This document shows positions 9,536 through 58,347 of a DNA stretch of 64,000 bases, piece after piece. Source of the stretch: Anaeramoeba ignava BMAN (taxonomy: Eukaryota; Protista; Anaeramoebae); assembly GCA_028826165.1 (NCBI GenBank), contig JAPDFW010000015.1, forward strand, positions 1 to 64,000. The letters are read 5' to 3'. Below the pieces are notes generated by a model. That model searched no databases, was not told where the DNA came from, and saw only the letters and a list, made by a program, of their open reading frames with translations. The position numbers were made by a program, and so were the translations under genes. Position 1 is the stretch's first letter; every line of letters begins with the position of its first letter.

Positions 9536-10727
9536 ATGAATTTACAAACTGATGAAATTTGTTTAATAATTACAGCAAGTTTTTCTCTATTTGGTTCATT
9601 AACTCTAATTACAACCTTTTTAATTTTCAAACAATTAAAATTTTTCTATCGCAAATTGGTTTTTATTCTTTCTGTTTACGATTTTTTACAAGTTGCCTGC
9701 TTTTTATTTCCAGGTCAAAAAAATGAAAAGATTTGCAAAGTCCAAATTTATTTATTAGCTTTTTTTGGTTTTAGTCCTTATTATTGGACTTCTGTCATTG
9801 CTATTATATCTTATCTTAAAGTTGTAAAAGGTTATCCTGATCGTAAACTCAATATTATTTCTAATTGGTTTCAACTTGTTTTGTGGATTTTAAATACTTT
9901 TTATTTTATTGAATGTTTTATTTTTTCTCCTCCTTTAAATTCTCCATCTTATTGGTATTTTGTTTTCCAAAAAAAAAAAATTCCACTTTTTTATTCCACT
10001 TTTTATTCCACTTTTTTATTCAACTTTTTATTAGGTGTTGGAATCAAAATGAAGGAATTATTATTGTATTGTTTAAATTTCTTTCTTTTGTTGATTTTTT
10101 TCTTTCTATTAATTTTTTCCTTTTTCTTTTTCTTTTTTTTCCCTAAGGCTGCTTATGTTAGTGCTTGGATAATTGGGGTTTGTTGTATTGTTTTCTATCT
10201 TTTGACAATAATTAGATTAAGAAAAATTAGTAAAATTCTTTCCAAAAACCAGAAGCTATTTCTTTCTCCTCAATATAAACAAATACAAATTCAATTTAGA
10301 ATGGCACTTATTCCTCTAATATACCTTATTTGTATTATTCCTGGAACTTTAGAAGTGAGTATTTAATATTTGATATTTGGATATTTATTATTTATTATTT
10401 GATTTAATTTTTCCTTTTCTTACTTTTTAGCATCTTTTTGAAATCACAAATTCTTCTCATTCAAATTCTACTTTACTTCATTCATTTTATTATATTTGTT
10501 CTTGCCTTCAAGGTTTTTTTGATTTTGTTATTTTTGTTCTTTTTGATTCTTCAATAAGACATAAAATTTTTAATTGTTGTTGTTCAAATTCTTCTCAAGA
10601 ATCCGGTTTATCTTATCAAGAATTTGATGAAAATGAAAAAATTTCACCTTTTGGAAATTTTCTATTTTCTCAAAAGAATGATCCAAGACAAGAAATACTT
10701 CTTGATATTAAAAAAGATGATGTTTAA
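9536..10727 (+). CDS. cAMP-receptor-like 7TM GPCR, array gene 1 (most divergent member)
   Basis: 4 exons, with microexon 10035-10065 and last exon from 10431. RKLVFILSVYD, CKVQ, YW|C and LQGFFDF motifs; Cys cluster in the C-tail. Confidence 0.85.
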
Positions 10728-10744
10728 GAAATCCAAAAACAGTT

Positions 10745-10747
10745 GAA

Positions 10748-10778
<31 letters not shown>

Positions 10779-10847: not shown

Positions 10848-10882
<35 letters not shown>

Positions 10883-11556: not shown

Positions 11557-12734
11557 ATGTTTGAATCAGAAGAAATATCCGCACTTGTTGGATCAGCTTT
11601 AGGAATATTTGGAGCATTAATGATAATAATATTATTTTCCAGAATTAAACAGATCAATTCATTATATCGAAACTTACTGATACTTTTATCCATTTATGAT
11701 TTTCTCGAATCATTTAGTTTTATATTACCTGGTCGATATAATAAAACTATTTGTGAAATTCAATTTTATCTGATTTCTATTTCTGTTACAATTACTCCAA
11801 TTTGGTCTGCAATTATTTCTTTCATTTTTTATTTGAAATTTGTGAAAAAAACTCAAGATAAAATACTAAATCGAATCTATAAATGGTTCCATTTATTTTT
11901 CTTAATCCCAATCACTATTTTGCTTATTCTTTCGGCTCATTTTACTGATTATCGAAATTCAACCACTTATTGGTATTTAATTTTTTCTTTTTGAATTTTT
12001 TCTTTTTGGATTAATAACTTTAGATATTTTTGGATTCTTTTTCTTTTCTTTAATAATAAAAGGTGTTGTTCAACTAAAATATCTTATTTGATTGTAATAA
12101 TTTTTTTAATTGAAAAGATTCAAATCACAAATTCATTTTATTCTTCTTTTTAGATTGTATATAGTTTCATTTGGCTTTCTTTACTAATTTGTTTGGTATT
12201 TTACAGTTTAACACTTCCTAAATTAACAAAATCACATCCTGATCTTTATCCTATAGAAGATTCTCAAATATCCAAACATCCTTTTCAAAAGAGAATGGGT
12301 TTTGTTCCTTTGATTTATATTTTGATAGTGATTCCTGCAACAATTAGAGTAAAAAAAATATTCAATATTCAATATTCAATTAATATTTAATATTTAATAT
12401 TCATTTAATATTTAATATTTAATAGAGAATAATTGATTTTGTTACATCTTCAAAAAAAGAATATCCTATAATCAATATTCTTCATTCTCTTTTTATTTGT
12501 TCACAAGGATTTTGGGATTTTTTGATTTTTGTTGTTTTTGATTCAAGAATGAGAAAATCACTGAAAAATTGTTTAACTTGTCAATGCAACAAACATTTAT
12601 CATATTCTGAAACTCAAGACAATAATTCCACTCAAAAAGAATTGGACGAAAGAAAAAGATTGACAGATTATGATCATTTACAAAATGATAATCAATAAGA
12701 AGATTCATTATTAAATGATAATTCTCTCATTTAA
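11557..12734 (+). CDS. cAMP-receptor-like 7TM GPCR, array gene 2
   Basis: 4 exons, with microexon 12063-12093 and last exon 12426-12734; SQGFWDF motif. Confidence 0.87.
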
Positions 12735-13022: not shown

Positions 13023-14812
13023 ATGAATTTATCAGAAGAAATATCAACAATAATTGGATCAACTTTAGGGATGATTGGAGCATTAATGATAATAATAATA
13101 TTTCTATATTTTAAAGAGATGACATTATTTTATCGAAAATTAGTTTTTATTTTATCAATTTATGATTTTTTTCAATCAATAAGTTTTTTATTACCAGGTC
13201 ATCAATATTATTCAGTTTGCCACGTTCAAATTTATTTTGTGGCTATTTTTGGTTCAACTTCTCAATTTTGGTCTGCAGCTATTTCTTTAGTTTTTTACTT
13301 GAAAGTTGTTAAGCAATTTGATGATAAAAGATTAAATAAAATCCAGAATTATCTTCATTTAATAATGTGGTTGATAAATATTCTTTTTATCGTTTTGGCT
13401 GCTTTTTCTCATGATTATCGTGAGTCTCAAACTTATTGGTATTTTTTATTCCCTTTTTAATTTTAATTTTTAAATTAATATTTATATTTATATTTATATT
13501 TATATTTCTATTATATTTATATTTATATTTATATTTATATTTATATTTATATTTATATTTATATTTATAATTATAATTATATTTATATTTATATTTATAT
13601 TTATATTTATAATTATATTTATATTTATATTTATATTTATATTTATATTTATATTTATATTTATATTTAGATTTATATTTATATTTATATTTATATTTAT
13701 ATTTATATTTATATTTATATTTATATTTATATTTATATTTATATTTATATTTATATTTATATTTATATTTATATTTATATTTATATTTATATTTATATTT
13801 ATATTTTAATTTTAATTTTTAATTTTAATTTTAATTTTAATTTTAATTTAAAAACAAAGGTGTATTCCAACTGATAAACCATATTTAATTGTAAGGATTT
13901 TAATCATTTCATTAATTAATTCAAAAATTTGGAAATAATTTTGGAATTTAATTTTTTTAAGGCACTTTATGTTATTTGTTGGATTTATCTTATTGCTTGT
14001 TTAGTATTTTATATTTTAACAATTATTCCATTAAGAGAACTTATAAAATTAAATTCAAAAGGATATTCTTCAACAAGAATAAGTCAAATAAATCAAGTTT
14101 GGATTCAAATAAGAATGAGTTTAATTCCATTAGTTGAAATTATTATTATGATTCCAGCAACAATTAGAGTAAATAATAAATATTCAAAATATTCAAAATA
14201 AATATTCAAAATAAATATTAAATATTCAAAATAAATATTAAATATTCAAAATTAAATATTCAAATTAAATATTCAAAATAAATATTCAAAATATATAAAA
14301 TAAATATTCAAATATTCAATAATAAATATTAAATATTCATAATAAATATTCAAAATAAATATTCAAAATAAATATTCAAAATAAATATTCAAAAATAAAT
14401 ATTCAAAATAAATAATAAATATTAAATATTTAATAATATTTAGAGATTCTGGGAAATCATAAAATCAAAAGCTCCTGATTATAATTCTCTTGATATTCTA
14501 CAAGCATTATTGATAACTTCACAAGGATTTTGGGATTTTTTCATTTTTATTATTTTTGATCCAGAAATGAGAGCAAAAATTCGAAGTTGTTGTTGTTCAA
14601 CTTCAAAATATTATCAACAAAATAGTTTTGTAGACATTCCAAATTATTCATCTCAAAATGAACAAAATTTATTTGGAAAAAAATATCTGTTTTTAAAAAG
14701 TAAAGAAAATGAACTTTTATTTGAAAATCAAGATGAAAATCAAGATGAAAATCAAAATGAAAATCAAAATAAAAATCAAAATGAAAATCTTCTTTTGATT
14801 GAAAATAATTAA
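13023..14812 (+). CDS. cAMP-receptor-like 7TM GPCR, array gene 3
   Basis: 4 exons, microexon 13860-13890; intron 1 is (TTTATA)n. Confidence 0.88.
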
Positions 14813-15050: not shown

Positions 15051-17951
15051 ATGACACTTGAAAAAGCAGAAGAAATTACAACATTATTTAGTTCAAGTTT
15101 AGGGATTGTTTCTTCATTAATAATTATCATAATTTTTATATATTTTAAAGAATACAGATTATTTTATCGAAAATTAGTTTTTATTTTATCAATTTATGAT
15201 TTTTTCCAATCATTAAGTTTTTTATTACCAGGAAAATCAAATCAAACTGTTTGTAAAATTCAAGCTTTAATGACAATAATTTTTGGAACAATTCCTTCTT
15301 TTTGGTCTGCTGTTATTTCTTTGGTTTCTTATTTCAAAATTGTTAAAGAATTTACTGACCAAAGATTAAATAAAATTCAAAATTTAATTCATTTGTTTGT
15401 TTTGATTCCTGTTGTTATTTTGGTTGCTGTTCATCTTTCCTTTTATGATGTTAATAGTTCAAAAACTTATTGGTATTTTCCAATAAATTAATTTAATATT
15501 TAATATAATATTTAATTTAATATTTAATATAATATTTAATTTAATATTTAATTTAATATTTAATTTAATATTTAATTTAATAATTAATATAATATTTAAT
15601 ATAATATTTAATTTAATAATTAATTTAATATTTAATTTAATAATTAATTTAATATTTAATTTAATAATTAATTTAATATTTAATTTAATATTTAATATAA
15701 TATTTAATATAATATTTAATTTAATATTTAATATAATAATTAATTTTTAATATTTAATTTAATAATTAATATAATATTTAATTTAATATTTAATTTAATA
15801 ATTAATATAATAATTAATATAATATTTAATATAATATTTAATTTAATATTTAATTTAATATTTAATATAATATTTAATTTAATATTTAATATAATATTTA
15901 ATTTAATATTTAATTTAATATTTAATATAATATTTAATTTAATATTTAATTTAATATTTAATTTAATATTTAATTTAATATTTAATTTAATATTTAATAT
16001 AATATTTAATATAATAATTAATATAATATTTAATTTAATATTTAATATAATATTTAATATAATAATTAATTTAATATTTATTTTAATATTTATTTTTAAT
16101 ATTTAATTTAATAATTAATTTAATATTTAATATAATATTTAATATAATATTTAATATAATATTTAATATAATATTTAATATAATATTTAATATAATATTT
16201 AATTTAATATTTAATTTAATAATTTAATATAATAATTTAATATTTAATATATAATTTAAATAATTAATTTAATTTTAATATTTATTATAATATTTAATAT
16301 AATATTTAATTTAATATTTAATTTAATATTTAATTTAGTATTTAATTTAATATTTAATTTAATAATTAATATAATATTTAATATAATATTTAATTTAATA
16401 TTTATTTTAATATTTAATATATTTAATTTAATATTTTTATTTAATATTTAATTTAATATTTAATATAATATTTAATTTTAATATTTAATTTAATATTTAA
16501 TTTAATATTTAATAATATTTAATTTAATATTTAATTTAATATTTAATATAATATTTAATTTAATATTTAATTTAATATTTAATTTAATATTTAATATAAT
16601 ATTTAATTTAATATTTAATTTAATATTTAATTTAATATTTAATTTAATATTTTAATATTTATTTTTGCATTAAAGGTGTTCCACAGAAAATCAAGTTGTT
16701 CTTATTGTATGAATATCCTTTTTTATTTGGAAATATTTTTAAAATCAATTTTGTTCATTTTTTTTGAAAAATTAATTGTAATTTGTTTAGACATTTTATT
16801 TATTTGTTTGGATTTATGGAATTACTTGTTTGGTTTTTTATATCATCACAATTGTTCAATTGAAAAGACTTTTCAAGTTAGTTTCAAAAGGATATTATTC
16901 AGCAAATATTAGTCAACCAAATCAATTTTGGATTCAAGTTAGAATGAGTTTAATTCCTTTAGTTGAATTTATTGTTATAATTCCAGCAACAATCGGAGTA
17001 ATTAATTTAAATATTATAAATAATTTATATAAATAATTTATTTAAATATTTTAATTTAAGTAATTGATTTAAATATTATAAATAATTGATTTAAGTAATT
17101 AATTTAAATATTATAAATAATTGATTTAAATATTATAAATAATTGATTTAAATATTATAAATAATTGATTTAAATATTATAAATAATTGATTTAAATATT
17201 ATAAATAATTGATTTAAATATTATAAATAATTGATTTAAATATTATAAATAATTGATTTAAATATTATAAATAATTGATTTAAATATTATAAATAATTGA
17301 TTTAAATATTATAAATAATTGATTTAAATATTATAAATAATTGATTTAAATATTATAAATAATTGATTTAAATAATTGATTTAAATATTATAAATAATTG
17401 ATTTAAATAATTGATTTAAATAATTGATTTAAATATTTTAATTTAAATTTTTGATTTAAATAATTGATTTAAATATTATAAATAATTGATTTAAATAATT
17501 GATTTAAATAATTGATTTAAATAATTGATTTAAATATTTTGATTTAAATAATTGATTTAAATATTTTGATTTAAATAATTGATTTAAATAATTGATTTAA
17601 ATATTTTGATTTAAATATTTTGATTTAAATAATTGATTTAAATATTTTGATTTATATATATTTTGATTTATATATATTTTTGATATAAAATAGAGATTAA
17701 GAGATATTATCAATCCTTCATGTTCTGATATACCTACACTTGATATTCTTCACTCTATTCTTTCAATTTCACAAGGATTTTGGGATTTTTTAATTTTTAT
17801 TGTTTTCGATCCAGAAATTCGAAAAAAAATAAGAGATTGTTGTTCTTCAAATCAATTCGAAAAATATGATTCTGGTTTCGATATTCAATCATATCAATCA
17901 AAAATGCAAGCAGATCTTTTTATAGATGATGAATTGGATCACAAAATTTAA
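15051..17951 (+). CDS. cAMP-receptor-like 7TM GPCR, array gene 4
   Basis: 4 exons, microexon 16676-16706, last exon 17694-17951; introns 1 and 3 are repeat-expanded. Confidence 0.88.
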
Positions 17952-18364: not shown

Positions 18365-19620
18365 ATGAGTTTAGAAACACAAGAAATATCAACATTAATT
18401 GGAGCAAGTTTAGGAATTTTTGGAGCATTAATGATAATAATAATTTTTCTTTATTTTAAAGAATACAAACTATTTTATAGGAAATTAGTTTTTGTTTTAT
18501 CAATTTATGATTTCTTTCAATCATTAAGCTATTTATTACCAGGAAGTTCAAATAAAATTATTTGTGATATTCAATTTTATATGATTCCTATTTTTGGACC
18601 AACTCCTTCTTTTTGGGCTGCAGTTATTTCTATTATTTCTTATTTGAAAATTGTTAAACAATTTAATGATAGAAAATTAAATAAGATTTATAAATGGATT
18701 CATTTATCAATTTTGATTCCAATGATTATTTTGTTTATAGATGCAATAATTTCTCAAGATTATAAAAAATCAACTGATTATGTGTAATTGATTTATTGAT
18801 TTAAAATTAAAATCAAAATCAAAATTAAAATCAAAATCAAAATCAAATTCAAAATCAAAATTAATATCAAAATCAAAATCAAAATCAAATTCAAAATCAA
18901 ATTCAAAATCAAATTTAAAAAGGTGTATTTCTACAACTAGAATATCACTTATTGTAAGAATTATAATTCAAATTCAAAATCAAATTCAAAATCAAAATCA
19001 AATTTAAATAATAAATTTTGATTTTTTGGATTTTTCACTTTATTTATTTATTTTTGAAATTAGTTCGCTTTTTCATTCATTTGGATATTTATTATTGCTT
19101 GTTTAATATTTTACATTTTATCAATGATTAGATTAAGAAAATTTATTAAATTAATTTCAGAAGGATATTCTTCAACAAAAAAAAGTCAAAAAAATCAAAT
19201 TTGGATTCAAATAAGAATGAGTTTAATTCCTTTAATTCAAATTATTATTACAATTCCATTAACAATTAAAGTAAATATTTGATTTATTTAAATTTTGATT
19301 TTGAATTTAAAATTTTGAATTTTAAATTTTGGATTTAATAGAGAATAAGAGAAATAATTAATCCATCAGTTTCTGGAATGGATTTTAATGATATTTTATC
19401 ATCTTTACTTTTTTCTTCACAAGGATTTTGGGATTTTTGGATATTTATTATTTTTGATCCAGAAATTAGATTAAAATTAAAAAATTGTTTTTGTTGTTCA
19501 AATTATCCTCAAGAAAATGATTTATTTGATCTTCAAAAAAATAATCAATTAAGAATGGAAAACAAAAATGAAAATAAAAATGAAAATGAAATATTTTTTG
19601 AAGATGAAAATTTCAATTAA
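18365..19620 (+). CDS. cAMP-receptor-like 7TM GPCR, array gene 5
   Basis: 4 exons; ECL2 reads YVC instead of YWC across the splice junction. Confidence 0.88.
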
Positions 19621-19815: not shown

Positions 19816-21013
19816 ATGAGTTTAGAAACACAAGAAATATCAGCATTAATTGGAGCAAGTTTAGGAATTTTTGGAGCATTAATGATAATAATAATTTTTC
19901 TTTATTTTAAAGAATACAAACTATTTTATAGAAAATTAGTTTTTGTTTTATCAATTTATGATTTCTTTCAATCATTAAGCTTTTTATTACCAGGAAGTTC
20001 AAATAAAATTATTTGTGATATTCAATTTTATATGATTCCTATTTTTGGACCAACTCCTTCTTTTTGGGCTGCAACTATTTCTGTTATTTCTTATTTGAAA
20101 ATTGTTAAAGAATTTAATGATAAAAAATTAAATAAAATTTATAAATGGATTCATTTATCAATTTTAATTCCAATGATTATTTTGTTTATAGATGCAATAA
20201 CTTCTCGTGATTATAAAAAATCAACTGATTATTTGTATTTATTGTTTTAATTTTAAAATCCAAAATCAAAATCAAAATCAAAATCAAAATCAAAATTAAA
20301 ATCAAAATCAAAATCAAATCAAAAAAATCAAAATCAAAATTAAAATCAAAATCAAAATTAAATAGGTGCGTTTCAACAACTAGAATATCACTTATTGTAA
20401 GAATTATAATTCAAATTTAATTCCAAATTCAAATTCAAATTCAAATTCAAATTTAAATAATAAATTTTGATTTTTTGGATTTTCCACTTTTTATTTATTT
20501 TGAAATTAGTTCGCTTTTTCATTCATTTGGATATTTATTATTGCTTGTTTAATATTTTACATTTTATCAATGATTAGATTAAGAAAATTTATCAAATTAA
20601 TTTCAGAAGGATATTCTTCAACAAAAATAAGTCAAACAAATCAAATTTGGATTCAAATAAGAATGAGTTTGATTCCTTTAATTCAAATTATATTTACAAT
20701 TCCAGTAACAATTAAAGTAAATATTTCATTTATTTTATATTATTAATTTTATTAATTTTGGATTTAATAGAGAATAAGAGAAATAATTAATCCATCAGTT
20801 TCTCAAATACTTTCACTTGATATTTTATCATCTTTACTTTTTTGTTCACAAGGATTTTGGGATTTTTGGATATTTATTATTTTTGATCCTGAAATTAGAT
20901 CAAAATTAAAGAATTGTTTTTGTTGTTCAAATTATCCTCAAGAAAATAATTTGTTTGATCTCAAAAATCAAAATCAAAATCAAAATCAAAATCAAAATGA
21001 AAATATTTTTTGA
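19816..21013 (+). CDS. cAMP-receptor-like 7TM GPCR, array gene 6 (close duplicate of gene 5)
   Basis: 4 exons; ECL2 reads YLC. The stop may lie at 21032 if one extra A near 21001 is a sequencing error. Confidence 0.85.
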
Positions 21014-27309: not shown

Positions 27310-27386
27310 ATAAAAATATTAATAATAATAAAATTGTTATTCCTCATTTAATTTTAATTTTTAATTTAATTTTAAATTTTAAAAAG

Positions 27387-27614
27387 AGAATAAGAGAAAT
27401 AATTAATCCATCAGTTTCTGAAATACTTTCACTTGATATTTTATCATCTTTACTTCTTTGTTCACAAGGATTTTGGGATTTTTGGATTTTTATTATTTTT
27501 GATCCTGAAATTAGATCAAAATTAAAAAATTGTTCTTCTTCAAAAAAATATCAAGAAGTTGATTTAGTTGATTTTCAAAATGAAGAAGAATTAAGAATGG
27601 AAAACAATTTTTAA
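27387..27614 (+). other. Intact orphan GPCR exon 4 (TM7 + C-tail); possible alternative terminal exon or duplication relic
   Basis: AG acceptor at 27385-27386, open phase-0 frame RIREIINPSVSEILSLDILSSLLLCSQGFWDF...RMENNF*, no exons 1-3 of its own. Confidence 0.8.
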
Positions 27615-27821
27615 TTCTCTTTTTCTTTTTAAATTACTTTTTAAATTCAATCCGAAAATAAAATCTTTTATTCCCCTTTTCATTATTTTATTTTAAATTT
27701 TTTATTCTTCTTTTATTTTTTTTATCTTTTTGATCAGTTTGATCAAGAAACCATTTTTTTTTATTATTTTTTTCATTATTTTTTTTTTGGATTAATCCAA
27801 ATTTTTCAATCAAAATTAAAA

Positions 27822-28977: not shown

Positions 28978-29140
28978 TTCTCTTTTTCTTTTTAAATTAC
29001 TTTTTAAATTCAATCCGAAAATAAAATCTTTTATTCCCCTTTTCATTATTTTATTTTAAATTTTTTATTTTTCATTTTTCATTTTTCCAAATAGTTTTTT
29101 TTTTTTGCTAGTTCAAAAAAAACATCAAAAATTTTTTAAA

Positions 29141-36512: not shown

Positions 36513-36539
36513 AAAAAAAGACTGCAAAAAGCATTAATT

Positions 36540-45700: not shown

Positions 45701-48493
45701 ATGAAAGGAGAAGAAATTGCAACAATAATAGGAGCAAGTTTAGGATTAATTGGAGCTTTATTAATTATAATAATTTTTCTTTATTTTAAATCAACAAAGA
45801 TATTTTATAGAAAATTAGTTTTTATTTTATCAATTTATGATTTATTTCAATCATTAAGCTTTTTATTACCAGGAAATTCAGATCAAAATCTTTGCAAAAT
45901 TCAATATTATTTTCTTGCTATTTTTACAACAACTTCTCAATTTTGGTCTGCAAGTATTTCTGTTATTTCTTATTTAAAAGTTGTTAAACAAATTGATGAT
46001 AAAAAGTTAAATAAAATCCAAAAATGGTCTCATTTAATAATGTTAATTCCAATTATTGTTTTAATTATTATTGCTGCTTATGCTCATGATTATGACGATT
46101 CAAAAACTTATTGGTATTTTTATTGTTTTAAATTTAATTTTGATTTTAATTTTTATTTTAAATTTGATTTTGGTTTTGATTTTAATTTTAATTTTGATTT
46201 TAATTTTAATTTTGATTTTGATTTTGATTTTAATTTTGATTTTGATTTTAATATTGATTTTAATTTTAATTTTGATTTTGATTTTGATTTTAATTTTAAT
46301 TTTGATTTTGATTTTGATTTTAATTTTAATTTTTATTTTTGATTTTAATTTTAATTTTAATTTTGATTTTAATTTTGATTTTAATTTTAATTTTGATTTA
46401 GGTGTGCTTCAACAACTCAAATTTATTTAATTGTAAAAGAAATCAAACAAAAATATTTTATTTTTAAATCAAATTATTTTTTATTATTTTAATTTTAATT
46501 TATTTGAAGCTTGTTTTGTTTTTATATTTTAATTTTCAATTAAGAAAATATTTTAAATCAATTTCAAATAATAGTTCTTTTGATTAACTTTCTCAAATAA
46601 GAATGAGTTTAATTCCTTTATTTCTAATTTTTAATTTTTAGAGTATAAATATTTAATATTTAATTAAATATAAAATATTTATAAAATATTCAAATATAAA
46701 ATATTCAATATATAAAATTTTAAATATTCAATATAAAATATTCAATATATAAATATTCAATATATAATATTCAATATAAAATATTAAATATTCAATATTC
46801 AATATTCAATATAAAATAAAAATATATAAATATATAAATATAAAATATTCAATATAAAATATTAAATATTCAAATCAATATTCAATATAAAATATTTTCA
46901 ATATAAATTATAAATATTCAATATTTATAAATTATTATTTTTTAAAATATTCAATATATATTCAATATAAAAATATTCAATATAAATAGTCAATCGTATT
47001 CAATATAAATATTCAATATAAAATATTGTTTGGATTTATTTGATATATTCTTGTTTTTATTTTTATTTTTAACAATTTATTCAATTAAGAAAATATTTAA
47101 AATATTTCAAATAAAATATTCTCATCAAAACAAAAGACAAAATTTCAATTAACAATAATCAATATAAAAATATTCAATATTCAATATTCAAAAATATAAA
47201 TACAAAATAAATATTGTAGTATAAAAAAAATTAAAATATTCAATATAAATATTCAATATTAAAATATTCAATATATAAATATTCGGTATAAAATATTCAA
47301 TATAAAATATAAAAAATATTCTCAATATAAAATATTAAATATTCAATATAAAAATATTCAATATAAAAATATTCAATATTTATAAAATATTCAATATTAA
47401 ATATTCAAAAAAATATAAATAGTTTAAATATTCAAAATATAAATATTTCAAAATAAATATTCAGTATAAAATATAAATATTCAATATTCAATATTCAATA
47501 TAAAATATTAAATAATATAAAATATTCAATATATAATAATATTCAATATAAAATATTCAAAATATAAAAAAATATTTAAAATATTATAAATATTCAATAT
47601 TAAAATATTTCAATATTCAATATAAAATATTCAATAATATAAATATATTCAATGATTCAATATTCAATATTAAATATTAAAATATTCAATATTCAATATA
47701 TAAAATATTAAAATAAATATTAATATATAAATATTCAATATAAAATATATTAAATATTCAATATTCAATAAAATATTCAATATAAAATATTCAATAAAAT
47801 ATTCAATATAAAAATATTCAATATAAAATATTCAATATAAAATATAAATAATCAATATTAAATATTCAATATATAAATATATAAAATATAAAATATTCAA
47901 AAATATATAAATATAAAATATTCAATATAAATATTCAATATAAAATATAAATATTCAATATAAAATATTCAATATAAAATATAAATATTCAATATAAAAT
48001 ATTCAATATAAAATATTCAATATAAAATATAAATAGTCAATATTAAATATAAATATTCAATATAAAATATTCAATATTCAATATTCAATATTCAATATTC
48101 AATATAAAATATAAAATATTCAATATAAAATATAAATATTCAAAATAAATATTCAATATAAAATAATAGAGATTAAGAAATATAATCAGCCCATCTGCTT
48201 CTGATATTATTGCAATTGATATCCTTCATTCATTACTTGCTTCTTCTCAAGGTTTTTGGGATTTTTGGATTTTTGTAGTTTTTGATCCAGAAATGAGAAA
48301 TAAAATAAAAGGTTGTTGTTGTTGTTGTTCAAATTTATTCCATTTACAAGAAAATGAACTTTCAGATATTTCAGCTTTTGAAAAACTTCCAAATCAAGAA
48401 AATGATCTATTTTTGAGTGAAAATCCAAAATCCAAATCAAGTGGATTTAGACCTCTTCTTCAAAATTCAAACAAAGAAGAATCTTTGAATTGA
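45701..48493 (+). CDS. cAMP-receptor-like 7TM GPCR, array gene 21; exon 3 garbled (pseudogene or mis-assembly)
   Basis: Exons 1, 2 and 4 are intact. Exon 3 appears only as two corrupted copies at ~46500-46645 and ~47025-47160. Confidence 0.65.
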
Positions 48494-48729: not shown

Positions 48730-50449
48730 ATGAAAGGAGAAGAAACAGCAACAATAATAGGAGCAAGTTTAGGATTAATTGGAGCTTTATTAATTATAAT
48801 AATATTTCTTTATTTTAAAGAAAACAAAATATTTTATAGAAAATTAGTTTTTATTTTATCAATTTATGATTTATTTCAATCAATAACTTATTTATTACCA
48901 GGAAATTCAGATCAAAATCTTTGTGAAATTCAATATTATTTACTTGCTATTTCTGCAACAACTTCTCAATTTTGGTCTGCAAGTATTTCTGTTATTTCTT
49001 ATTTAAAAGTTGTTAAAGAAATTGATGATAAAAAATTAAATAAAATCCATAAATGGTTTCATTTAATAATGTTAATTCCAATTATTATTTTAATTATTAT
49101 TGCTGCTTATTCACATGATTATAACGATTCAAAAACTTATTGGTATTTTTATTGTTTTAAATTTAATTTTAATTTTGATTTTAATTTTAATTTTAATTTT
49201 AATTTTAATTTTTATTTTAATTTTAATTTTAATTTTAATTTTGATTTTAATTTTAATTTTGATTTTAATTTTGATTTTAATTTTAATTTTAATTTTAATT
49301 TTAATTTTAATTTTAATTTTAAATTTGATTTTAATTTTGATTTTAATTTTAATTTTAATTTTAATTTTAATTTTAATTTTAATTTTAAATTTGATTTTTA
49401 ATTTTAATTTTAATTTTAATTTTGATTTTAATTTAATTTTAATTTTAATTTTAATTTTAATTTTGATTTTAATTTTAATTTTGATTTTAATTTTAAATTT
49501 GATTTTAATTTTGATTTTGATTTTAATTTTAATTTTGATTTTAATTTGATTTTGGATTTTAATTTTAATTTTAATTTTGATTTTGATTTTAATTTTAATT
49601 TTAATTTTAATTTTAATTTTAATTTTAATTTTAATTTTAATTTTAATTTTAATTTTAATTTTAATATTAATTTTAATTTTAATTTTAATTTTGAATTTGA
49701 TTTTGGTTTTAATTTAGGTGTGCTTCAACAACTCAAATTTATCTTATTGTAAAAGAAAACAAACAAAAAATATTTTCCCAATTATTTTTAAATCAAATTA
49801 TTTTATTATTTTCCTTTGATGCTGATATTTAGTTTATTTATGGCTTTAATTGGATTTATGTTATAAATTGTTTAGTTTTTTATATTTTAACAATTATTCA
49901 ATTAAAAAAAGTATTTAAATCAATTTCAAGCGATCATTCTTTTTCTTCATTAACAGCTCAAAAAAATCAACTTTGGATTCAAATAAGAATGAGTTTAATT
50001 CCATTAATTCAAATTATAATTATGATTCCAGCAACAATTAGAGTATAAATATTCAAAATATAAAATATTCAATATATAAATAATAAATATTCAATATTCA
50101 AAATAATATTCAAAATATAAATATTAGAGATTAAGAAATATAATAGATCCATCTGCTTCTGATATTATTGTAATTGATATCCTTCATTCATTACTTGTTA
50201 CTTCTCAAGGTTTTTGGGATTTTTGGATATTTTATTATTTTTGATCCAGAAATGAGAGATAAAATAAAAGGTTGTTGTTGTTCAAATTTAAAACAAAAAT
50301 ATTTCCAAGAAAATGAAGTTTCAGATATTTCAACTTATCAAAAATTCCCAAATCAAGAAAAAGATCTTTTTTTAATCAAAAGCTCAAATTTTAAATCAAG
50401 TGAATTTAAACCTCTTCTTCAAAATTCAAACAAAGAAGATCTAAATTGA
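48730..50449 (+). CDS. cAMP-receptor-like 7TM GPCR, array gene 22 (apparent +1 T near 50232)
   Basis: 4 exons; intron 1 is (TTTTAA/TTTTGA)n; C-tail is close to that of gene 20. Confidence 0.82.
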
Positions 50450-50722: not shown

Positions 50723-51919
50723 ATGAAAGGAGAAGATATATCAGCAATAGTTGGATCAAGTTTAGGGGTGATTGGGGCATTAATCATAATAATAATATTT
50801 CTATATTTCAAAGAATACAGTTTATTTTATAGAAAATTAGTTTTTATTTTATCAATTTATGATTTTTTTCAATCCTTCAGTTATTTATTACCAGGTCATT
50901 CAAATCAAGTTCTTTGCAAAATTCAATACTATTTACTTGCTGTTTCTGCAACAACTACTTCTTTTTGGTCTGCTGCAATTTCTTTTATTTCTTATTTAAA
51001 AGTTGTTAAAGGTTTTAATGATAAAAAATTGAATAAAATTCATAAATGGTTTCATTTAATAATGTTAATTCCAATTATTGTTTTTGTTTCTATTGTTTCT
51101 GTTACAAGAGATTATGAAAGTTCAAAAACTCATTGGTATTTTAAAATTCATTTATAAAATTCATTTATAAAATTGATTTAATTTTCTTGCAAAAAAAATA
51201 GGTGTTTTTCAACTGCTGAACCTTTTATAATTGTAAAAATTCAAATGAAAAAAAGAAAATTTTCTTTTGGAATGAATTTTAATTCTTTTATCTTTACAAA
51301 TCTTTTTTTTTAGACTGTTTATGCTTTTATTTGGACTTTCATTTTTATTTGCTTAATATTTTATATTTTAACAATGAAATTCTTGAGAAAAATATTTAAA
51401 GTAGTTTCATCAGAATATTCACATCAATCACAAACAAATCAAATGAATCAAGTTTGGGTTCAAATAAGAATGAGTTTGATTCCATTAGTTTATATTATTG
51501 TTGAAATTCCAGCAACAATTAGAGTAATATTTATTTTGATTTAAAATTACTTATATTTATATTTATACTAATTTTGATTTTTGATTTTAAAGAGATTAAG
51601 AGAAGTGATTAAACCTTCATCTTCTGAAAATTTTACACTTGATGTTTTTCATTCATTACTTGCAACTTCTCAAGGATTTTGGGATTTTTGGATTTTTATA
51701 GTTTTTGATCCAGAAATGAGAGAAAAATTGAAACATTCTTGTTGTTCAACTTCTCAAAAATATTTTCAAGCAAATCCTGATTTTGATCTTCAAACTTATG
51801 ATACTTCAATTAAGAAAAATCTACTTTCAATAAATGATTCCTTTGAAATTGAATCAAAAAATTCTAAACCTTTATTTGATTTTGGAAATCAAAATCAAAA
51901 TCAAAATCATAAAAATTGA
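50723..51919 (+). CDS. cAMP-receptor-like 7TM GPCR, array gene 23
   Basis: ATG at 50723 (MKGED); 4 exons with short introns. Confidence 0.88.
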
Positions 51920-52163: not shown

Positions 52164-55100
52164 ATGAAAAAACCACAAGAAATATGCACAATAATTGGGT
52201 CAAGTTTAGGATTTATTGGATCATTATTAATAATAATATTTTATTTATTATTCAATCAATTATATTTTCTTTATCGAAAATTAATATTTATTTTATCAGT
52301 TTATGATCTAATTCAATCAATAAGTTATTTATTACCTGGACATTCAAACAGAATTTTTTGTCGGATTCAATTTGAATTAATTACTGGTTTTGCAACTTGT
52401 GCTCAATTTTGGTCTGCTTCAATTTCTTTTATTTCTTTTCTTAAAGTTGTTAAAGAATTTGATGATAAAAAATTAAATAAAATTCAGAAATTTCTTCATG
52501 TTGCCATGTGGTTTATTTCTATTACTTTTATTCTTCTTTCTTTTTTTGTTGGAAATCCTGAAGAATCTACTACTTATTGGTAATTTTTTTTCTTTAATTG
52601 ATAATTGAATTTTTTTTTCTTTAATTGAATAATTGATTTTTTTAATAGGTGCATGTCAACAGAAAAACCCATTATAATTGTAAATCTAAATCTAAATCTA
52701 AATATAAATATAAATATATAAATCTAAATATAAATATAAATCTAAATATAAATCTAAATATAAATCTAAATATAAATATAAATATAAATATAAATATAAA
52801 TATAAATATAAATATAAATATAAATATAAATATAAATATAAATATAAATATATAAATATAAATATAAATATAAATATAAATATAAATATAAATATAAATA
52901 TAAATATAAATCTAAATATAAATCTAAATATAAATATAAATATAAATCTAAATATAAATATAAATATAAATATCATTACAAAATATAAATATAAATCTAA
53001 ATCTAAATCTAAATATAAATATAAATCTAAAATCTAAATCTAAATCTAAAAATATAAATATAAATATAAATCTAAATCTAAATATAAATCTAAATATAAA
53101 TATAAATATAAATATAAATATAAATATAAATCTAAATCTAAATCTAAATATAAATATAAATATAAAATATAAATCTAAATATAAATATAAATCTAAATCT
53201 AAATATAAATATAAATATAAATATAAATATAAATCTAAATATAAATATAAATATAAATATAAATATAAATCTAAATCTAAATATAAAAATATAAATATAA
53301 ATATAAATATAAATCTAAATATAAATATAAATATAAATATAAATATAAATATAAATATAAATATAAATATAAATATAAATATAAATCTAAATCTAATTAT
53401 AAATATAAAATATAAATATAAATATAAATCTAAATATAAATATAAATCTAAATCTAAATATAAATATAAATATAAATCTAAATATAAATATAAATATAAA
53501 TATAAATATAAATATAAATCTAAATATAAAAATCTAAATATAAATATAAATATAAATATAAATCTAAATCTAAATCTAAATCTAAATCTAAATCTAAATC
53601 TAAATCTAAAAATAAAAACATAAATATAAAATATAAATATAAATATAAATATAAATATAAATATAAATATAAAATATAAATATAAATATAAAATAAATCT
53701 AAATATAAAATATAATCTAAATCTAAATCTAAATATAAATCTAAATATAAATATAAATCTAAATCATAAATCTAAATCTAAATCACAAATAAATCTCAAA
53801 TCTAAATCATCAAATATAAATATAAATATAAATCTAAATCAAAAATATAAATATAAATATAAATATAAATATAAATATAAATATAAATATAAAATAAATA
53901 TAAATATAAATATAAATCTAAAAAATATAAATATAAATCTAAATATAAATATAAATATAAATATAAATCTAAAATAAAAAATCTAAATATAAATATAAAT
54001 ATAAATATAAATATAAATATAAATATAAATGAAAATATAAATATAAATATAAATATAAATATAAATATAAATATAAATATAAATATAAATATAAATATTT
54101 AAAATATAAATCTAAATCTCAAATCTAAATCTAAATCTAAATATAAATCTAAATATAAATATAAATATAAATATAAATATAAATATAATATAAATATAAA
54201 TATAAATATAAATATAAATATAAATATAAATATAAATAATCTAAATATAAATATAAATATAAATATAAATATAAATATAAATATAAATATAAATATAAAT
54301 ATAAATATAAATCTAAATATAAATCTAAATATAAATATAAATATAAATCTAAATCTAAATCTAAATCTAAATATAAATATAAATATAAATATAAATATAA
54401 AATATAAATATAAATATAAATCTAAATATAAATCTAAATATAAATATAAATATAAATATAAATATAAATATAAATATAAATATAAATATAAATATAAATA
54501 TAAATATAAATATAAATTGAAATATAAATATAAATATAATTAAATATAAATCTAAATTATAAAATTAAATAAAATATAAATATAAATCTAAAATATAAAT
54601 ATAAATATAAATATAAATATAAATATAAATATAAATATAAATATAAATTAAATATAAATATAAATATAAATATAAATATAAATATAAATATAAATATAAA
54701 TATAAATATAAATATAAATCTAAATATAAATCTAAATATAAATCTAAATATAAATATAAATATAAATATAAATATAAATATAAATATAAATCTAAATATA
54801 AATATAAATATAATTACAAATATAAATTAAATTATAAATATAAATATAAATATAAATATAAATATAAATATAAATATAAATATAAATATAAATATAAATA
54901 TAAATATAAATATAAATATAAATCTAAATATAAATCTAAATATAAATATTAATATTTGAAATTGTTTTATTTTTAGCCTCTTTATTCAGTAAATTGGGTT
55001 TATATTATCGCTTGCTTCATTTTTTATATTTTTACTATTATTAAAATTAGAAAAATTATAAAATTAAATTCTCAAGGAAATTATGGACCAAAAACAAGTC

Positions 55101-56633
55101 AAATGAGTCAAGTTTGGATTCAATTTAGATTAAGTTTAATTCCTTTAATTTATATTTTAATTTTTATTCCAGCAACAATTAGAGTACAAATCAAAACCAT
55201 TCCTTTTAAGGAAATAAATTAAATCAAATAAATTGAATTGAAATAAATTAAAATTGGATTGAATTGAATTGAATTGAATTAAATAAAATTGAATAAATTA
55301 AATAAATTGAATTGAATTGAATTGAATTAAATAAAATTGAATTGAATAAATTGATTTAAATTGAATTGAATTGAATTGATTTGAATTAAATTAAATAAAT
55401 TAAATTGAATTGAATTAAATTGAATTAATTGATTTAAATTGAATTAAATTGAATTAATTGAATTAAATTGAATTAATTGATTTAAATTAAATTGAATTAA
55501 ATTGAATTGAATTGAATTAAATTAAATTGAATAAATTGAATTGAATAAATTGAATTGAATAAATTAAATTAAATTAAATTAAATTAAATTAAATTAAATA
55601 AATTGAATAAATTGAATTGAATTAAATAAATTAAATTAAATTAAATTAAATTGAATTGAATTAAATTGAATAAATTAATTGAATTAAATTGAATTAAATT
55701 GAATTGAATTAAATTAAATAAATTAATTGAATTAAATTGAATTGAAATTGGATTGAATTGAATTGAATTGAATTGAATAAATTAAATTAAATTAATTGAA
55801 TAAATTAAATTAAATTAATTGAATAAATTAAATTGAATTAAATTAAATTAAATTGGATTGAATTAAATTAAATAAATTGAATTGAATTGATTTGATTTGA
55901 ATTGAATTAAATTGAATTAAATTAAATTGAATTGAATTGAATTGAATTAAATTGAATTAAATAAATTAAATTGAATTGAATTGAATTAAATAAATTGAAT
56001 TAAATTAAATTGAATTGAATTAAATTGAATTAAATTAAATTGAATTAATTGATTTGATTTGAATTAAATTAAATTAAATTAAATAAATTGAATTAAATTA
56101 AAATAAATTAAATAAATTAAATAAATAAATAAATTGAATTAAATGAATTGAATTGGATTGAATTGAATTGAATTGAATAAATTAAATTGAATTGAATAAA
56201 TTAAATTGAATTGAATTGAATTAAATTGAATTGAATTGAATTAAATTAAATTAAATTAATTAAATTGAATTGATTAAATCAATTAAATTGAATAAATTTA
56301 TTTATATTGATTTGATATTTTTAGAGGATTAGAACTTTGATAAATCCATCAGCAAATGATATCTTTTCTGTTGATATTATTCATTCCTTATTCGCTTCAA
56401 CTCAAGGTTTTTGGGATTTTTGGATATTTGTTGTTTTTGATTTAGAAATGAGGAAAAAAATTGGAAATTGTTTTTCTTGTTATTCAAAAAATAGACAAAA
56501 TGCAGCTCAATTAGATATTGAAGATTATAAAAATTTAAGAAATGAAACTTTTACTTTTTCAAAAGATCTTCTTAATTCAAAAGAAAGTGAAAGAAAATCT
56601 TTAATCCAAAATGATGAATTAGAAAAAAATTAA
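52164..56633 (+). CDS. cAMP-receptor-like 7TM GPCR, array gene 24
   Basis: 4 exons; intron 2 is ~2.3 kb and intron 3 ~1.1 kb of satellite. Confidence 0.86.
52680..54950. repeat. (AAATAT/AAATCT)n hexamer satellite in gene 24 intron 2
   Basis: About 2.3 kb of tandem hexamers. Confidence 0.92.
55215..56300. repeat. (GAATT/AAATT)n pentamer satellite in gene 24 intron 3
   Basis: About 1.1 kb of tandem pentamers. Confidence 0.9.
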
Positions 56634-56784
56634 TTTTTTATGTTTTTTGTTTTTTTTTTTTTGAATAAAAAAGAGAAAAAGGAAAATTCATTTTTTTCTT
56701 TTAAATTAAAAATTTTGAAATTAAATTTTGAAATTAAAAAAAATAAAATTTTTCTTGATAAGAAATTTTGAATAAAAATAAAAA

Positions 56785-58347
56785 ATGATAAAATCGGAAG
56801 AAATATCAACAATAATTGGAGCAAGTTTAGGAATTATGGGATCTTTATTAATTATAATATTATATATATATTTTAAAGAATGGAAAATATTTTATCGAAA
56901 ACTAGTTTTAATTTTGTCAATTTATGATTTCTTTCTATCATTAATATTTATATTGCCAGGTTCAAAATATTCTTTTGTTTGTTCAATTCAATTTTATTTA
57001 TTATCTGCTTTTATTACAACTTGTCAATTTTGGTCAGCTTCAATTGCTGTTTTATCTTATTTGAAAATTGCAAATCTTTTTACTGATTCGAAACTTAATA
57101 AAATTCATTTATGGCTTCATTTAATAATGTGGATCATTAATTTTGATTTAATTTTGTTCATTTTTTTACTTCCAAAATCGGAAAAATCTGATACTTATTG
57201 GTATTTTTTTTGATTTTTAGTAAAAATAATTTCATGTTATTTTTTTCTTATTTATTTTGTTTTCTTATTAAAGGTGTACTTCTACAACAAATTCTTGGTT
57301 AATTGTAAACCAATTTAAAATCAAAATTAAAATTCACTTTGAAAATTAAAATCCAAAATTAAAATTCATTTGAAAATTGAATTTAAAATCAAAATTCATT
57401 TTAAAATCAAAATTCATTTTAAAATTAAAATCCAAAATTAAAATCAAAATCAAAATTAAAATGAAAATTTTCAAATTTAAAATTTAAAATCAAAATCAAA
57501 ATTTTAAAATTAAAATTAAAATTAAAATCCAAAATTAAAATTCATTTGAAAATTGAATTTAAAATCAAAATCAAAATCAAAATTCAAAATTAAAATCAAA
57601 ATCAAAATTAAAATTTCAAAATCAAAATTAAATTCAAAATCAAAATCAAAATCAAAATCAAAATTCATTTTAAAATCAAAATCAAAATTCATTTTAAAAT
57701 GAAAATCAAAATCAAAATTAAAATCAAAATCAAAATTCATTTCAAAATCAAAATTCAAAATTAAAATTCTTTTTCATCTTTTCTTATTAGACAATTTATA
57801 CTTTCATCATTTTTTATATCGTTATTTGCTTAATCTTTTCCATTTTATCAATAATCAAATTAAATAAATCAAACAAAGAAAGTTCAAAAGGAAATTATTT
57901 ACAAAGAATTGGAGAAGAAAATCAAGTTTTCTTTCAAAAAAGAATGACTTTACTTCCAATAGTTGGAATTATAATTTTTATTCCAGGATTAATTAGGGTA
58001 AGAAATTAAAAAATGAAGAATTTTTTTTTTTTTGGATTGGCAAAAAAAAGTGGAATTTTTTTTTTTAAATTTATTAAAAATAGAGATTAAGAGAAATAAT
58101 TAATCCTTCTGCTTCTGATATTCTTACTCTTCATATTTTACATTCTTTACTTGTTTCAACTCAAGGTTTTTGGGATTTTTTGATTTTTGTAATTCTTGAT
58201 CCAGAAATGAGGAAAAAAATGAAAAGTTGTTGTTCAAAACAAAAAAAAGAAATGGCTAAGACTTCAAGTTACAAGACAATTGAAAAACATGTTGTTAATC
58301 AAATTGGAGAAGATTTTTCCGATCAAGAAAATCAAAAATTGATTTAA
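56785..58347 (+). CDS. cAMP-receptor-like 7TM GPCR, array gene 25
   Basis: 4 exons, last exon 58084-58347; TQGFWDF motif. Confidence 0.87.

Follow-up and report, generated by a model that had tools for sequence, protein, structure and literature searches.

The window analysed here, a stretch of 64,000 nucleotides from Anaeramoeba ignava, carries 25 paralogous seven-transmembrane (7TM) genes in tandem, all on the plus strand, which probably encode a lineage-specific, divergent group of cAR/Crl/GCR1/GPR157 ('class E-like') receptors that serves as a diversified chemosensory set, with G-alpha proteins as its transducers and RGS proteins as its off-switch. The host is an anaerobic, bacterivorous, symbiont-bearing amoeba and a free-living relative of the parabasalids.

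A tandem array of 25 receptor genes

A motif scan, combined with lists of open reading frames, placed the array at 9536-58347, from the first ATG to the last stop, in exact agreement with the copy number, single strand and limits given in the original prediction. A scan of the contig revealed no match to the receptor family on the opposite strand and none outside the array, and the gaps between the 25 genes measure 136-1177 nt. Splicing of the gene models, which had been proposed as a check, yielded clean four-exon GT..AG models for 19 of the 25 copies (297-340 aa, with 57 canonical introns across the 19 complete frames), and 13 independently built models are identical to GenBank proteins (Table 1). 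Three copies are clearly broken (g9, g15 and g21), and in three others (g13, g17 and g22) a one-base homopolymer change is the sole defect. The frameshift in exon 1 of g9, an exon 97% identical to its counterpart in g10, is an extra A that lies within the TM2 motif and outside any homopolymer. Pairwise protein identity among the copies is 30-90%, with most pairs at 30-55%, and the flanks of individual copies are unique. Because the copies are this divergent in protein they are not assembly duplicates, in line with the earlier judgement that a collapse of the copies was unlikely.

Table 1. Receptor genes and the orphan exon of the array, with positions in the window.
Feature	Position	Strand	Status and remarks
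g1	9536..10727	+	intact, four exons, 317 aa; most divergent copy; identical to GenBank P0024
g2	11557..12698	+	intact, 304 aa; identical to P0027
g3	13023..14812	+	intact, 340 aa; identical to P0012
g4	15051..17951	+	intact, 305 aa; introns 1 and 3 long; identical to P0019
g5	18365..19620	+	intact, 311 aa; W of WC motif replaced by V; identical to P0016
g6	19816..21013	+	intact, 299 aa; W of WC motif replaced by L; 90% identical to g5; identical to P0014
g7	21182..22512	+	intact, 327 aa; identical to P0011
g8	22711..24136	+	intact, 312 aa
g9	24321..25513	+	pseudogene; two frameshifts (exon 1; start of exon 3)
g10	25713..27309	+	intact, 328 aa; GenBank P0010 appends the orphan exon
orphan last exon (TM7 and tail)	27387..27614	+	
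g11	27822..28977	+	intact, 297 aa
g12	29141..30850	+	intact, 328 aa in this model; GenBank P0025 differs (296 aa)
g13	31017..32256	+	T-run in exon 3 (TM5) one base short; gene broken or assembly error
g14	32431..33610	+	intact, 328 aa; Logan contigs agree over 32656-33365 with no differences
g15	33818..34951	+	extra T 24 nt before end of exon 1; micro-exon 34329-34359 out of frame; pseudogene or altered product
g16	35114..36512	+	intact, 300 aa; identical to P0003
g17	37690..39441	+	A-run in exon 3 (ICL3) one A too long; gene broken or assembly error
g18	39578..41452	+	intact, 307 aa; identical to P0007
g19	42407..44039	+	intact, 328 aa; identical to P0008
g20	44224..45490	+	intact, 325 aa; protein used for structure model; identical to P0005
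g21	45701..48493	+	pseudogene; exon 3 decayed, with deletions and stops at about 46.5-46.65 kb
g22	48730..50449	+	T-run in last exon one T too long, directly after QGFWDF motif; gene broken or assembly error
g23	50723..51919	+	intact, 326 aa; identical to P0009
g24	52164..56633	+	intact, 320 aa; introns of 2.3 and 1.1 kb
g25	56785..58347	+	intact, 305 aa; identical to P0020

Gene structure and existing annotation

Each gene has four exons, the first of which contains TM1-4, as had been proposed, and one of which is a 31-nt micro-exon that encodes the invariant cysteine of ECL2. The pattern that describes this micro-exon (AG/G TGY N27/GT, with slashes at the exon borders) occurs 25 times on the plus strand, once per gene, compared with no occurrence on the minus strand and 0.05 in shuffled sequences. 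Intron 1 splits the W codon of the WC motif, and an initiator-like TCATTTTT element lies upstream of each gene, one apiece. The micro-exon did not figure in the original description of the genes.

Transcriptome ORFs matched only paralogues outside the window, P0031 (C52) and P0023 (C46), and both were rejected as transcript support for the micro-exon, the former being a two-exon gene and the latter a mis-spliced transcript of the C46 copy. Short-read Logan contigs match paralogue-specific stretches exactly, though repeats dominate and the contig type is uncertain, and they are not independent evidence as they probably come from the same project as the assembly. One such contig starts exactly at the modelled exon-3 acceptor of g14 (33018), which is no more than a hint.

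The expectation that the array would be easily under-annotated was not borne out, as at least 20 of the 25 copies already appear as GPCR, GPR157 or GCR1-like in GenBank. The 31-nt micro-exon and the homopolymer breaks account for several faulty deposited models. P0013 (g13) bridges the missing base with an artificial intron, P0002 (g21) lacks TM5-6 and P0001 (g22) lacks the end of TM7. We found no publication that names the array copies as GPCRs, and the main text of the genome paper and the supplementary material searched do not mention the array genes or G proteins.

Array proteins are predicted to adopt a GPCR fold

An alignment of 21 GenBank proteins contains all of the motifs on which the original prediction was based, in nearly invariant form. 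These are Y-R-K-L-V-F-I-L-S-I-Y-D in TM2, C-x-[IV]-Q at the top of TM3, FW[SA]A, W-C, R-M-S-L-I-P-L...P-x-T-I-R and S-Q-G-F-W-D-F...F-D-P-E. The same alignment bears out the cysteine-rich C-tails, with a cluster of cysteines after helix 8, as well as the very short N-termini, which comprise 6-10 residues (fewer than 15 before TM1); the receptors have no ectodomain.

An AlphaFold2 model of g20 (P0005; pLDDT 78, pTM 0.74) has the seven membrane helices that had been anticipated (residues 3-28, 35-55, 62-94, 100-127, 144-180, 185-224 and 232-255), followed by an amphipathic helix 8 (258-268). Foldseek searches with this model returned 447 GPCR matches at E<=1e-3, while VIA aligned it to 50 GPCR entries with Z scores of 24.3-20.8. 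The best matches among solved structures were FZD7 (Z 24.3, rmsd 2.8 over 250 residues) and FZD4 (Z 23.7), with class A receptors at Z 21-22. As judged from this model, the array proteins are small seven-transmembrane receptors with the GPCR fold.

The TM3-ECL2 cysteine pair typical of this fold is also present and is predicted to form a disulfide: C65 is invariant and C139 nearly so (>=90%) in the 21 family members, and across 120 distant homologues these two are the only invariant columns. Predicted inner loops plus helix 8 carry a mean of 17.0 K+R residues versus 5.9 for the outer loops (19 proteins), so that the positive-inside rule predicts a topology with the N-terminus outside and the C-terminus inside.

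The nearest known family is cAR/Crl/GCR1/GPR157

The array had originally been assigned to the cAR/Crl/GCR1 type, an assignment that holds by way of intermediate sequences but not by a direct Pfam match. No match to PF05462 (cut-off 21 bits) was obtained at E<=1 with exon pieces and 10 full-length proteins, and no window protein reached a Pfam gathering score; a six-frame genome scan with PF05462 was also empty, a weak result as the scan matched nowhere at all. On the other hand, a profile built from 21 members and searched against 1.8 billion sequences gave 1773 matches, led outside the genus by GPR157-like proteins at E of about 1e-23, and 88 of 120 distant profile matches carry PF05462. Profile alignment with hhalign to a coral GPR157 gave 98.3% and E 1.3e-14 over 257 columns; this coral protein has a PF05462 score of 49 bits. 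Closer to the array, P0040 of A. flamelloides scores 30.1 bits on PF05462, and P0031, P0037 and P0045 exceed the cut-off of PF11970 (Git3 C-terminal); the proteins that pass either model are A. flamelloides relatives and one basal A. ignava paralogue, and in the tree all of them cluster with the window genes. A language-model atlas likewise ranked Dicty_CAR clusters first. Taken together, these comparisons support cAR/Crl/GCR1/GPR157 as the nearest known family.

Members of this family resemble the array proteins in being 7TM proteins of 300-350 aa with a very short N-terminus, in sharing the TM3-ECL2 cysteine pair, W-C in ECL2, Q-G-F in TM7 and a basic helix 8, and in significant profile-level homology across all seven helices. 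They differ in TM7, where the family consensus Q-G-F-x-N...Y-G corresponds to Q-G-F-W-D-F...I-F in the array (N to D, Y-G to I-F), and in ECL2, where distant members have W-C-W and the array keeps W-C (except in g5 and g6). The array also stands apart in falling below PF05462 and in its micro-exon for ECL2. To our knowledge, cAMP binding is true only of the four Dictyostelium cARs, and we know of no ligand for GPR157, GCR1 or most Crl proteins. For most members of the cAR family no ligand is known (PMC10445921).

Frizzled (PF01534) is the best Pfam match for several copies (19.5 bits versus a cut-off of 22.3), but Frizzled receptors have a cysteine-rich ectodomain and the array proteins have none. 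Cross-matches between the Dicty_CAR and Frizzled models are known (PMC10445921). We also rejected the Dictyostelium 'frizzled-like sans CRD' family, as the profile favours GPR157/cAR (E about 1e-23) over Frizzled (0.016), and Secretin/adhesion (PF00002), for which the best score was 19.5 bits, in P0011 only, versus 20.6, and whose members carry a hormone-binding or GAIN domain, whereas the array proteins have no ectodomain. A sequence-profile search of the PDB gave weak generic matches only (5-HT2A at 3.6e-4, Frizzled at 0.016).

The array grew by local duplication

In the tree, the window genes fall together with a small number of other A. ignava copies in a clade (support 99) that has no A. 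flamelloides member, and adjoining genes are each other's nearest relatives. Duplicated intergenic DNA and an orphan last exon lie inside the array; the repeat in which this exon sits (27337-27636) shares 93% identity with the last-exon region of g11, and the exon itself was either left behind by unequal crossing-over or is used by g10 as an alternative last exon. The tandem layout, the species-specific clade, the pseudogenes and the orphan exon agree with the birth-and-death cluster that had been proposed. As read from the tree and the repeats, these observations show that the array grew through successive local duplications once the two Anaeramoeba species, A. ignava and A. flamelloides, had separated, accompanied by gene loss and partial copies.

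Selection differs between the two halves of the receptor

The array genes are under purifying selection overall, and change in the outward-facing half of the proteins proceeds at roughly twice the rate seen in the inward half. Column entropy is 1.35 in the outer and 0.97 in the inner half, and a maximum likelihood codon model (F3X4 frequencies, fixed FastTree topology) gave an omega of 0.29 for the core, 0.37 (0.26-0.49) for the outer half and 0.19 (0.13-0.27) for the inner half. Within a young clade the difference is 0.72 versus 0.30 (Fisher p=0.004). Pairwise NG86 estimates of dN/dS (0.5-1.2) were discarded, as the codon model gives much lower values and the genome is about 81% A+T. The variable columns cluster in outer TM3, TM4, ECL2 and TM5, which is where GPCR ligands bind. 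Entropy and omega therefore uphold the original contrast between conserved intracellular faces and variable TM3, TM4 and ECL2, except that ICL3 and the C-tail vary strongly as well. In the comparison by region, which had been suggested as a check for positive selection, omega exceeded 1 in no region, poorly aligning loops aside, and positive selection is thus not demonstrated.

Proposed role of the array and alternative explanations

On the basis of these patterns, a role of the array as a chemical-sensing repertoire is plausible. Each receptor would bind a small ligand inside the outer half of its helix bundle, a location suggested by an N-terminus of 6-10 residues with no ectodomain, and the conserved inner half (TM2, the cytoplasmic end of TM3, TM6 and TM7-helix 8) would relay the signal to transducers of one common class. 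These would most likely be drawn from the numerous G-alpha proteins of this genome, which RGS proteins would turn off, and the array would thereby provide this amoeba with a diversified chemosensory set. The 'common G protein' of the original prediction was conjecture; G-alpha exceeds the cut-off at no fewer than 25 loci of the A. ignava genome, not one, and there are 64 RGS domain matches.

The abundance of RGS domains is also what would be expected if the array encoded genuine cAR/GPR157-like 7TM receptors that do not act as exchange factors for heterotrimeric G proteins, and instead engage arrestin-domain or kinase partners or scaffold self-activating G-alpha proteins set by RGS, as proposed for Trichomonas and plants. 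There are precedents for such an arrangement, as Trichomonas, of the sister lineage, is reported to have self-activating, fast-exchanging G-alpha plus 7TM-RGS proteins and to lack both GPCRs and G-beta/gamma (PMC3865004), while cAR-like receptors occur without heterotrimeric G proteins in Thecamonas, ciliates and Guillardia (PMC3971589). A genome search for G-gamma (PF00631) gave no match, a result that says little since it matched in no control genome either. Considering that the inner half, the would-be G protein dock, is the most conserved part of these receptors and that G-alpha has greatly expanded alongside them, we regard this explanation as rather unlikely. A similarly unlikely explanation, to which we give slightly less credence, is that a single receptor type, for example a sensor of nutrients or cell density comparable to fungal Git3 or Dictyostelium RpkA/Crl, was amplified for dosage or subfunctionalised, with an outer half that is under relaxed constraint only. 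The omega values below 1 outside the poorly aligning loops, the compatibility of the young clade's outer omega with relaxation, the match of basal paralogues to PF11970 and the 3-6 of 25 copies that are already broken can all be read in this way. Yet most pairs have diverged to 30-55% protein identity with the inner half still conserved, open frames and splice sites are kept in 19 copies, and the variability is concentrated in the outer TM3, TM4, ECL2 and TM5, the ligand-binding region of GPCRs.

It seems highly improbable that the array is a product of misassembly or a collection of dead copies. Nanopore reads of an extremely A+T-rich genome underlie the assembly (PMC11550330), and three of the breaks are single-base homopolymer changes, but the copies are 10-70% different in protein and have unique flanks, the short-read contigs (albeit probably from the assembly project itself) match paralogue-specific stretches, and a core omega of 0.29 goes together with 19 complete frames and their canonical introns. 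We retain the chemosensory receptor set coupled to G-alpha as the preferred reading. A wider version of it is less likely than not: the array and at least 32 other family loci, along with the G-alpha loci (25 or more) and the many RGS genes, might belong to an independently evolved, large GPCR chemosensory system with receptors tuned to different bacterial or symbiont metabolites. If true, this would make Anaeramoeba a test case for receptor-driven G-protein activation outside Amorphea, and the array offers a concrete gene set for testing whether such receptors drive G proteins in this lineage.

Comparison with known receptor repertoires

The layout of the array resembles that of animal chemoreceptor clusters (vertebrate odorant and taste receptors, nematode serpentine receptors), which share its tandem same-strand arrangement and species-specific clades, its pseudogenes, partial copies and local gene conversion, as well as a ligand-facing half that changes faster than the transducer-facing half. 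Animal chemoreceptors, however, belong to an unrelated GPCR family within the superfamily, and the host of the array is unicellular.

Among cAR-type receptors, the original prediction held that copies are usually few. This agrees with a survey of eukaryotes that reported about ten per genome or fewer (de Mendoza et al. 2014, PMC3971589), but not with the larger cAR-like sets noted since in a sponge, ciliates and Physarum (PMC4302439, PMC9960496, PMC10445921). With at least 57 such loci in its genome, 25 of them in one array and at least 32 elsewhere, A. ignava exceeds the sponge set of 14 (PMC4302439), and the literature searched held no description of a comparable single tandem array. As this family escapes Pfam, domain-based GPCR censuses would miss the array.

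The expansions of cAR-like receptors in Physarum, Acanthamoeba, Protostelium, Stentor and Paramecium are, like this one, lineage-specific and have no orthologues elsewhere (PMC10445921, PMC9960496). Those expansions are found in Amoebozoa and ciliates, whereas the array belongs to a sister lineage of the parabasalids, of which Trichomonas was reported to have G-alpha but neither GPCRs nor G-beta/gamma (PMC3865004). The cAR/GPR157-like loci of A. ignava, set beside its expanded G-alpha and RGS families, show that this branch of the eukaryotes, too, can evolve a receptor repertoire of large size.

Array organization and gene structure

A motif scan of the window returned 23 strict-form matches to the TM2 motif, all on the plus strand; adding one frameshifted copy (24.4 kb) and one divergent copy (56.9 kb) gives 25 tandem receptor genes (g1-g25, numbered 5' to 3'). 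The open reading frames (ORFs) place the first ATG at 9536 and the final stop at 58347, exactly the limits originally predicted for a 25-copy array, and the motifs quoted in that prediction are all present and nearly invariant in the family protein alignment. The array observation is correct and well above chance. The G+C content of 8-25% per 2 kb across the window is in line with the 80.65% A+T published for the Nanopore and Illumina assembly of the A. ignava nuclear genome (PMC11550330), and the flanking genes on both sides are unrelated to the receptors (Table).

Mapping GenBank proteins back onto the window showed that each gene has four exons, not three: exon 1 (~417 nt) encodes TM1-4, exon 2 is a micro-exon of 31 nt carrying the ECL2 cysteine, exon 3 (207-210 nt) encodes TM5-6, and the last exon supplies TM7, helix 8 (H8) and the tail. 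Intron 1 interrupts the Trp codon of the W-C motif. The micro-exon pattern with an open frame (AG/G-TGY-N27/GT) was found once in each gene, giving 25 plus-strand matches compared with none on the minus strand and 0.05 in shuffled sequence. Independent gene models, built from rules for splice sites and motifs, gave complete frames of 297-340 aa for 19 genes; every one of their 57 introns is GT..AG, and 13 of the 19 models are letter-for-letter the same as the GenBank proteins. Joined coding sequences were used for alignment, trees and codon models, and exon pieces or GenBank proteins served as search queries.

The expectation that the array had been under-annotated did not hold, as GenBank already names at least 20 of the 25 copies as GPCRs. 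A word-based protein search with an exon-1 ORF matched A. ignava proteins only, and these are called 'g-protein coupled receptor 157', 'g-protein coupled receptor 1' or 'g protein-coupled receptor'. In many copies intron 1 is packed with 6- or 12-nt microsatellite arrays. Since these arrays remain open in several frames, they give rise on either strand to long ORFs that are spurious, such as 23134-23490 (minus strand) and read-through ORFs of 276 and 223 aa, and for this reason the ORF track looks fragmentary or misleading.

Coordinates of features in the window and elsewhere in the A. ignava genome (Cnn, contigs)
Feature	Location	Strand	Remarks
Intein/LAGLIDADG-bearing ORF	642-1613	minus	Flank of array
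CENP-L domain protein	5967-7502	plus	E 4e-12; flank of array
Microsatellite-filled introns (examples)	22991-23600, 26100-26650, 46100-46430, 49100-49750		
Orphan last exon	27387-27614	plus	Open; between g10 and g11
BTB + coiled-coil + TLDc protein	58480-60324	plus	Flank of array
Ankyrin-repeat (+BTB) protein	62931-63995	minus	Flank of array
Further receptor array	C46:176-190 kb	minus	Seven copies
Further receptor array	C60:986-1013 kb		
Further receptor array	C82:254-264 kb		
Further receptor array	C64:265-271 kb		
Further receptor array	C122:115-120 kb		
Basal paralogue P0031	C52:28587-31343	minus	Two exons
G-alpha loci (examples)	C60:444448-445740, C82:508859-509314, C119:9278-9709		

A common upstream element

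At least one copy of TCATTTTT lies 30-90 nt upstream of the ATG in 23 of the 25 receptor genes, against 3.3 expected, often as 2-8 tandem copies, and the element also precedes broken receptor copies. Overall, 46 of the 63 plus-strand matches fall within the 150 nt preceding a receptor ATG. Matches at 5937 and 58447 precede the unrelated CENP-L and BTB-TLDc genes too, and the element is probably a general initiator-type core promoter of A. ignava, reminiscent of the TCA-type initiator of Trichomonas. Since the intergenic gaps between receptor genes are only 136-1177 nt, its presence suggests that each copy is its own compact transcription unit.

The array proteins form a divergent branch of the cAR group

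Neither the exon pieces nor ten full-length proteins reached the gathering score of any Pfam family; sub-threshold matches were to Frizzled (19.5 bits), 7tm_1 and 7tm_2, and the Dicty_CAR family PF05462, proposed as a check in the original prediction, gave no match at all to these array proteins. A PF05462 search of the genome in six frames was likewise blank, though it carries little weight as it matched nowhere. The fold itself is that of a GPCR. An AlphaFold model of g20, based on an alignment of 21 family members (pLDDT 78, pTM 0.74), has seven long helices plus helix 8, and the predicted inner loops are threefold enriched in basic residues relative to the outer loops. Foldseek matched this model to several hundred class A, B and F GPCRs. 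Structural re-alignment ranked inactive FZD7 (Z 24.3, rmsd 2.8 over 250 residues) and FZD4 (Z 23.7) ahead of many class A receptors (Z 21-22.5), and no cAR or GPR157 structure was among the structural matches.

The Dicty_CAR, Frizzled and 7tm_2 models are known to cross-match within the cAR group (PMC10445921), and the profile comparisons favor that group over Frizzled. A profile of 21 family proteins, searched against 1.8 billion representative proteins, gave 1773 matches at E<=1e-3 and 431 at E<=1e-10. The top matches were A. ignava and A. flamelloides proteins, followed by GPR157-like proteins from corals and from a nemertean, one protein from a chytrid, and unnamed ones from protists. Among 120 more distant matches, PF05462 was found in 88, 7tm_2 in 59, 7tm_1 in 49 and Frizzled in 46, and the two cysteines of the TM3-ECL2 pair are the sole invariant positions over all of them. 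Alignment of the family profile to Pocillopora GPR157, itself scoring 49 bits on PF05462, covered all helices (hhalign, probability 98.3%, E 1.3e-14, 257 columns). Basal Anaeramoeba paralogues score above the cut-off for PF05462 (P0040, 30.1 bits) or PF11970 (Git3 C-terminal), and a language-model look-up ranked Dicty_CAR-bearing clusters from ciliates, plants, chordate GPR157 and sponge first. The array proteins are therefore a divergent branch of the cAR/Crl/GCR1/GPR157 group, a membership that follows from transitive homology and not from the Pfam test.

Duplication, decay and selection

One clade of the protein tree (SH-aLRT 99) unites the 19 intact window genes with six further A. ignava paralogues. 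All but one of the sampled A. ignava sequences fall within a species-specific group, and the eleven A. flamelloides sequences form two separate clades of their own. Neighbouring window genes group with each other (g5-g8 with g10 and g11; g14 with g19; g16, g18 and g20), and pairwise protein identity between copies is 30-90% (median 54%).

Six of the 25 copies are broken in the assembly, and their GenBank models bypass the breaks via artificial introns or truncations. The copy g9 has two frameshifts, one of them an inserted A within the TM2 motif and outside a homopolymer; in g15 a T inserted 24 nt short of the 3' end of exon 1 puts the micro-exon out of frame; and exon 3 of g21 has decayed. 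The breaks in g13 (near 31.71 kb), g17 (near 38.45 kb) and g22 (near 50.22 kb) are each a one-base difference within a T- or A-run and could be assembly errors. Public runs covering the window consist of short Logan contigs from one 2023 sample and one 2022 run; compared over 31001-37000 (6,000 nt), these match paralogue-specific stretches exactly and show neither splicing nor frameshift sites reliably.

An orphan last exon sits in a repeat (27337-27636) with 93% identity to the g11 last-exon region, and the GenBank model P0010 (383 aa) joins it to g10; it may have been left behind by unequal crossing-over or serve g10 as an alternative last exon. The intergenic stretches 3' of g7 and of g8 are 92% identical, and pseudogene g9 shares 97% identity with g10 in exon 1. 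Together with the orphan exon, these are traces to be expected of repeated unequal crossing-over. The top of TM3 has the same 15 residues (C-R-A-Q-Y-F-L-L-A-I-F-G-S-T-P) in the adjacent genes g11 and g12 (28026-29380), yet these genes belong to different sub-clades of the tree, a pattern compatible with gene conversion. The predicted cAR/GCR1-type birth-and-death cluster is largely borne out, with the exception of the PF05462 test.

Simple NG86 dN/dS ratios are inflated at this base composition; the values given here (omega) come from a maximum likelihood codon model (GY+F3X4) on a fixed topology. Omega was 0.29 for the 7TM core, 0.37 (bootstrap 0.26-0.49) for the outer helix halves and extracellular loops, and 0.19 (0.13-0.27) for the inner halves with ICL1, ICL2 and H8. 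In the youngest clade the outer and inner values were 0.72 and 0.30, with 66 outer versus 31 inner amino-acid-variable columns and 10 versus 18 synonymous-only variable columns (Fisher p=0.004). Outer TM4, outer TM5, ECL2, ECL3 and outer TM3 varied most, and inner TM2 and inner TM7 least; high variability was also seen in ICL3 and the tail, though these align poorly. The array genes are therefore under purifying selection, with an outer half that is clearly looser or diversifying; none of the omega values given here exceeds 1, the level that would indicate positive selection.

Receptors and G-protein components elsewhere in the genome

A profile search of the genome (42.8 Mb in 147 contigs), counting N-terminal-half loci as a lower bound, found at least 57 family loci on 16 contigs, including further arrays (Table). 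The C46 array shares the four-exon structure of the window genes, as checked for one copy (P0022). The basal paralogue P0031 has a single intron, at the intron 1 position; therefore the micro-exon and later introns are specific to the subfamily containing the window genes. In the transcriptome-derived EukProt set there is one exact match to P0031, along with one ORF, P0023, that stems from a C46 copy whose transcript has aberrant junctions around the micro-exon and retains intron 2. G-alpha (PF00503) is represented by at least 25 separate loci above the cut-off on many contigs and RGS (PF00615) by 64 matches, counts that point to a G-protein toolkit very large for a protist. G-gamma (PF00631) gave no match in a genome search that cannot show absence.

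Comparison with known receptor repertoires

A literature search found no paper with both 'Anaeramoeba' and 'GPCR', and the main text and available supplements of the A. ignava genome paper mention neither G proteins nor these receptors (PMC11550330). In Trichomonas, G-alpha and 7TM-RGS proteins have been described, with no GPCRs and no G-beta/gamma (PMC3865004). Non-GRAFS families, including cAMP receptors, had fewer than 10 members in every genome surveyed by de Mendoza et al. in 2014 (PMC3971589). A later count gave 14 cAR-like receptors in a sponge (PMC4302439); some ciliates have many, and Physarum, Acanthamoeba and Protostelium each contain large groups of them (PMC9960496, PMC10445921). 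Set against these systems, the array is a large and divergent set of a known kind of receptor, and bears on GPCR evolution in the sister lineage of parabasalids.
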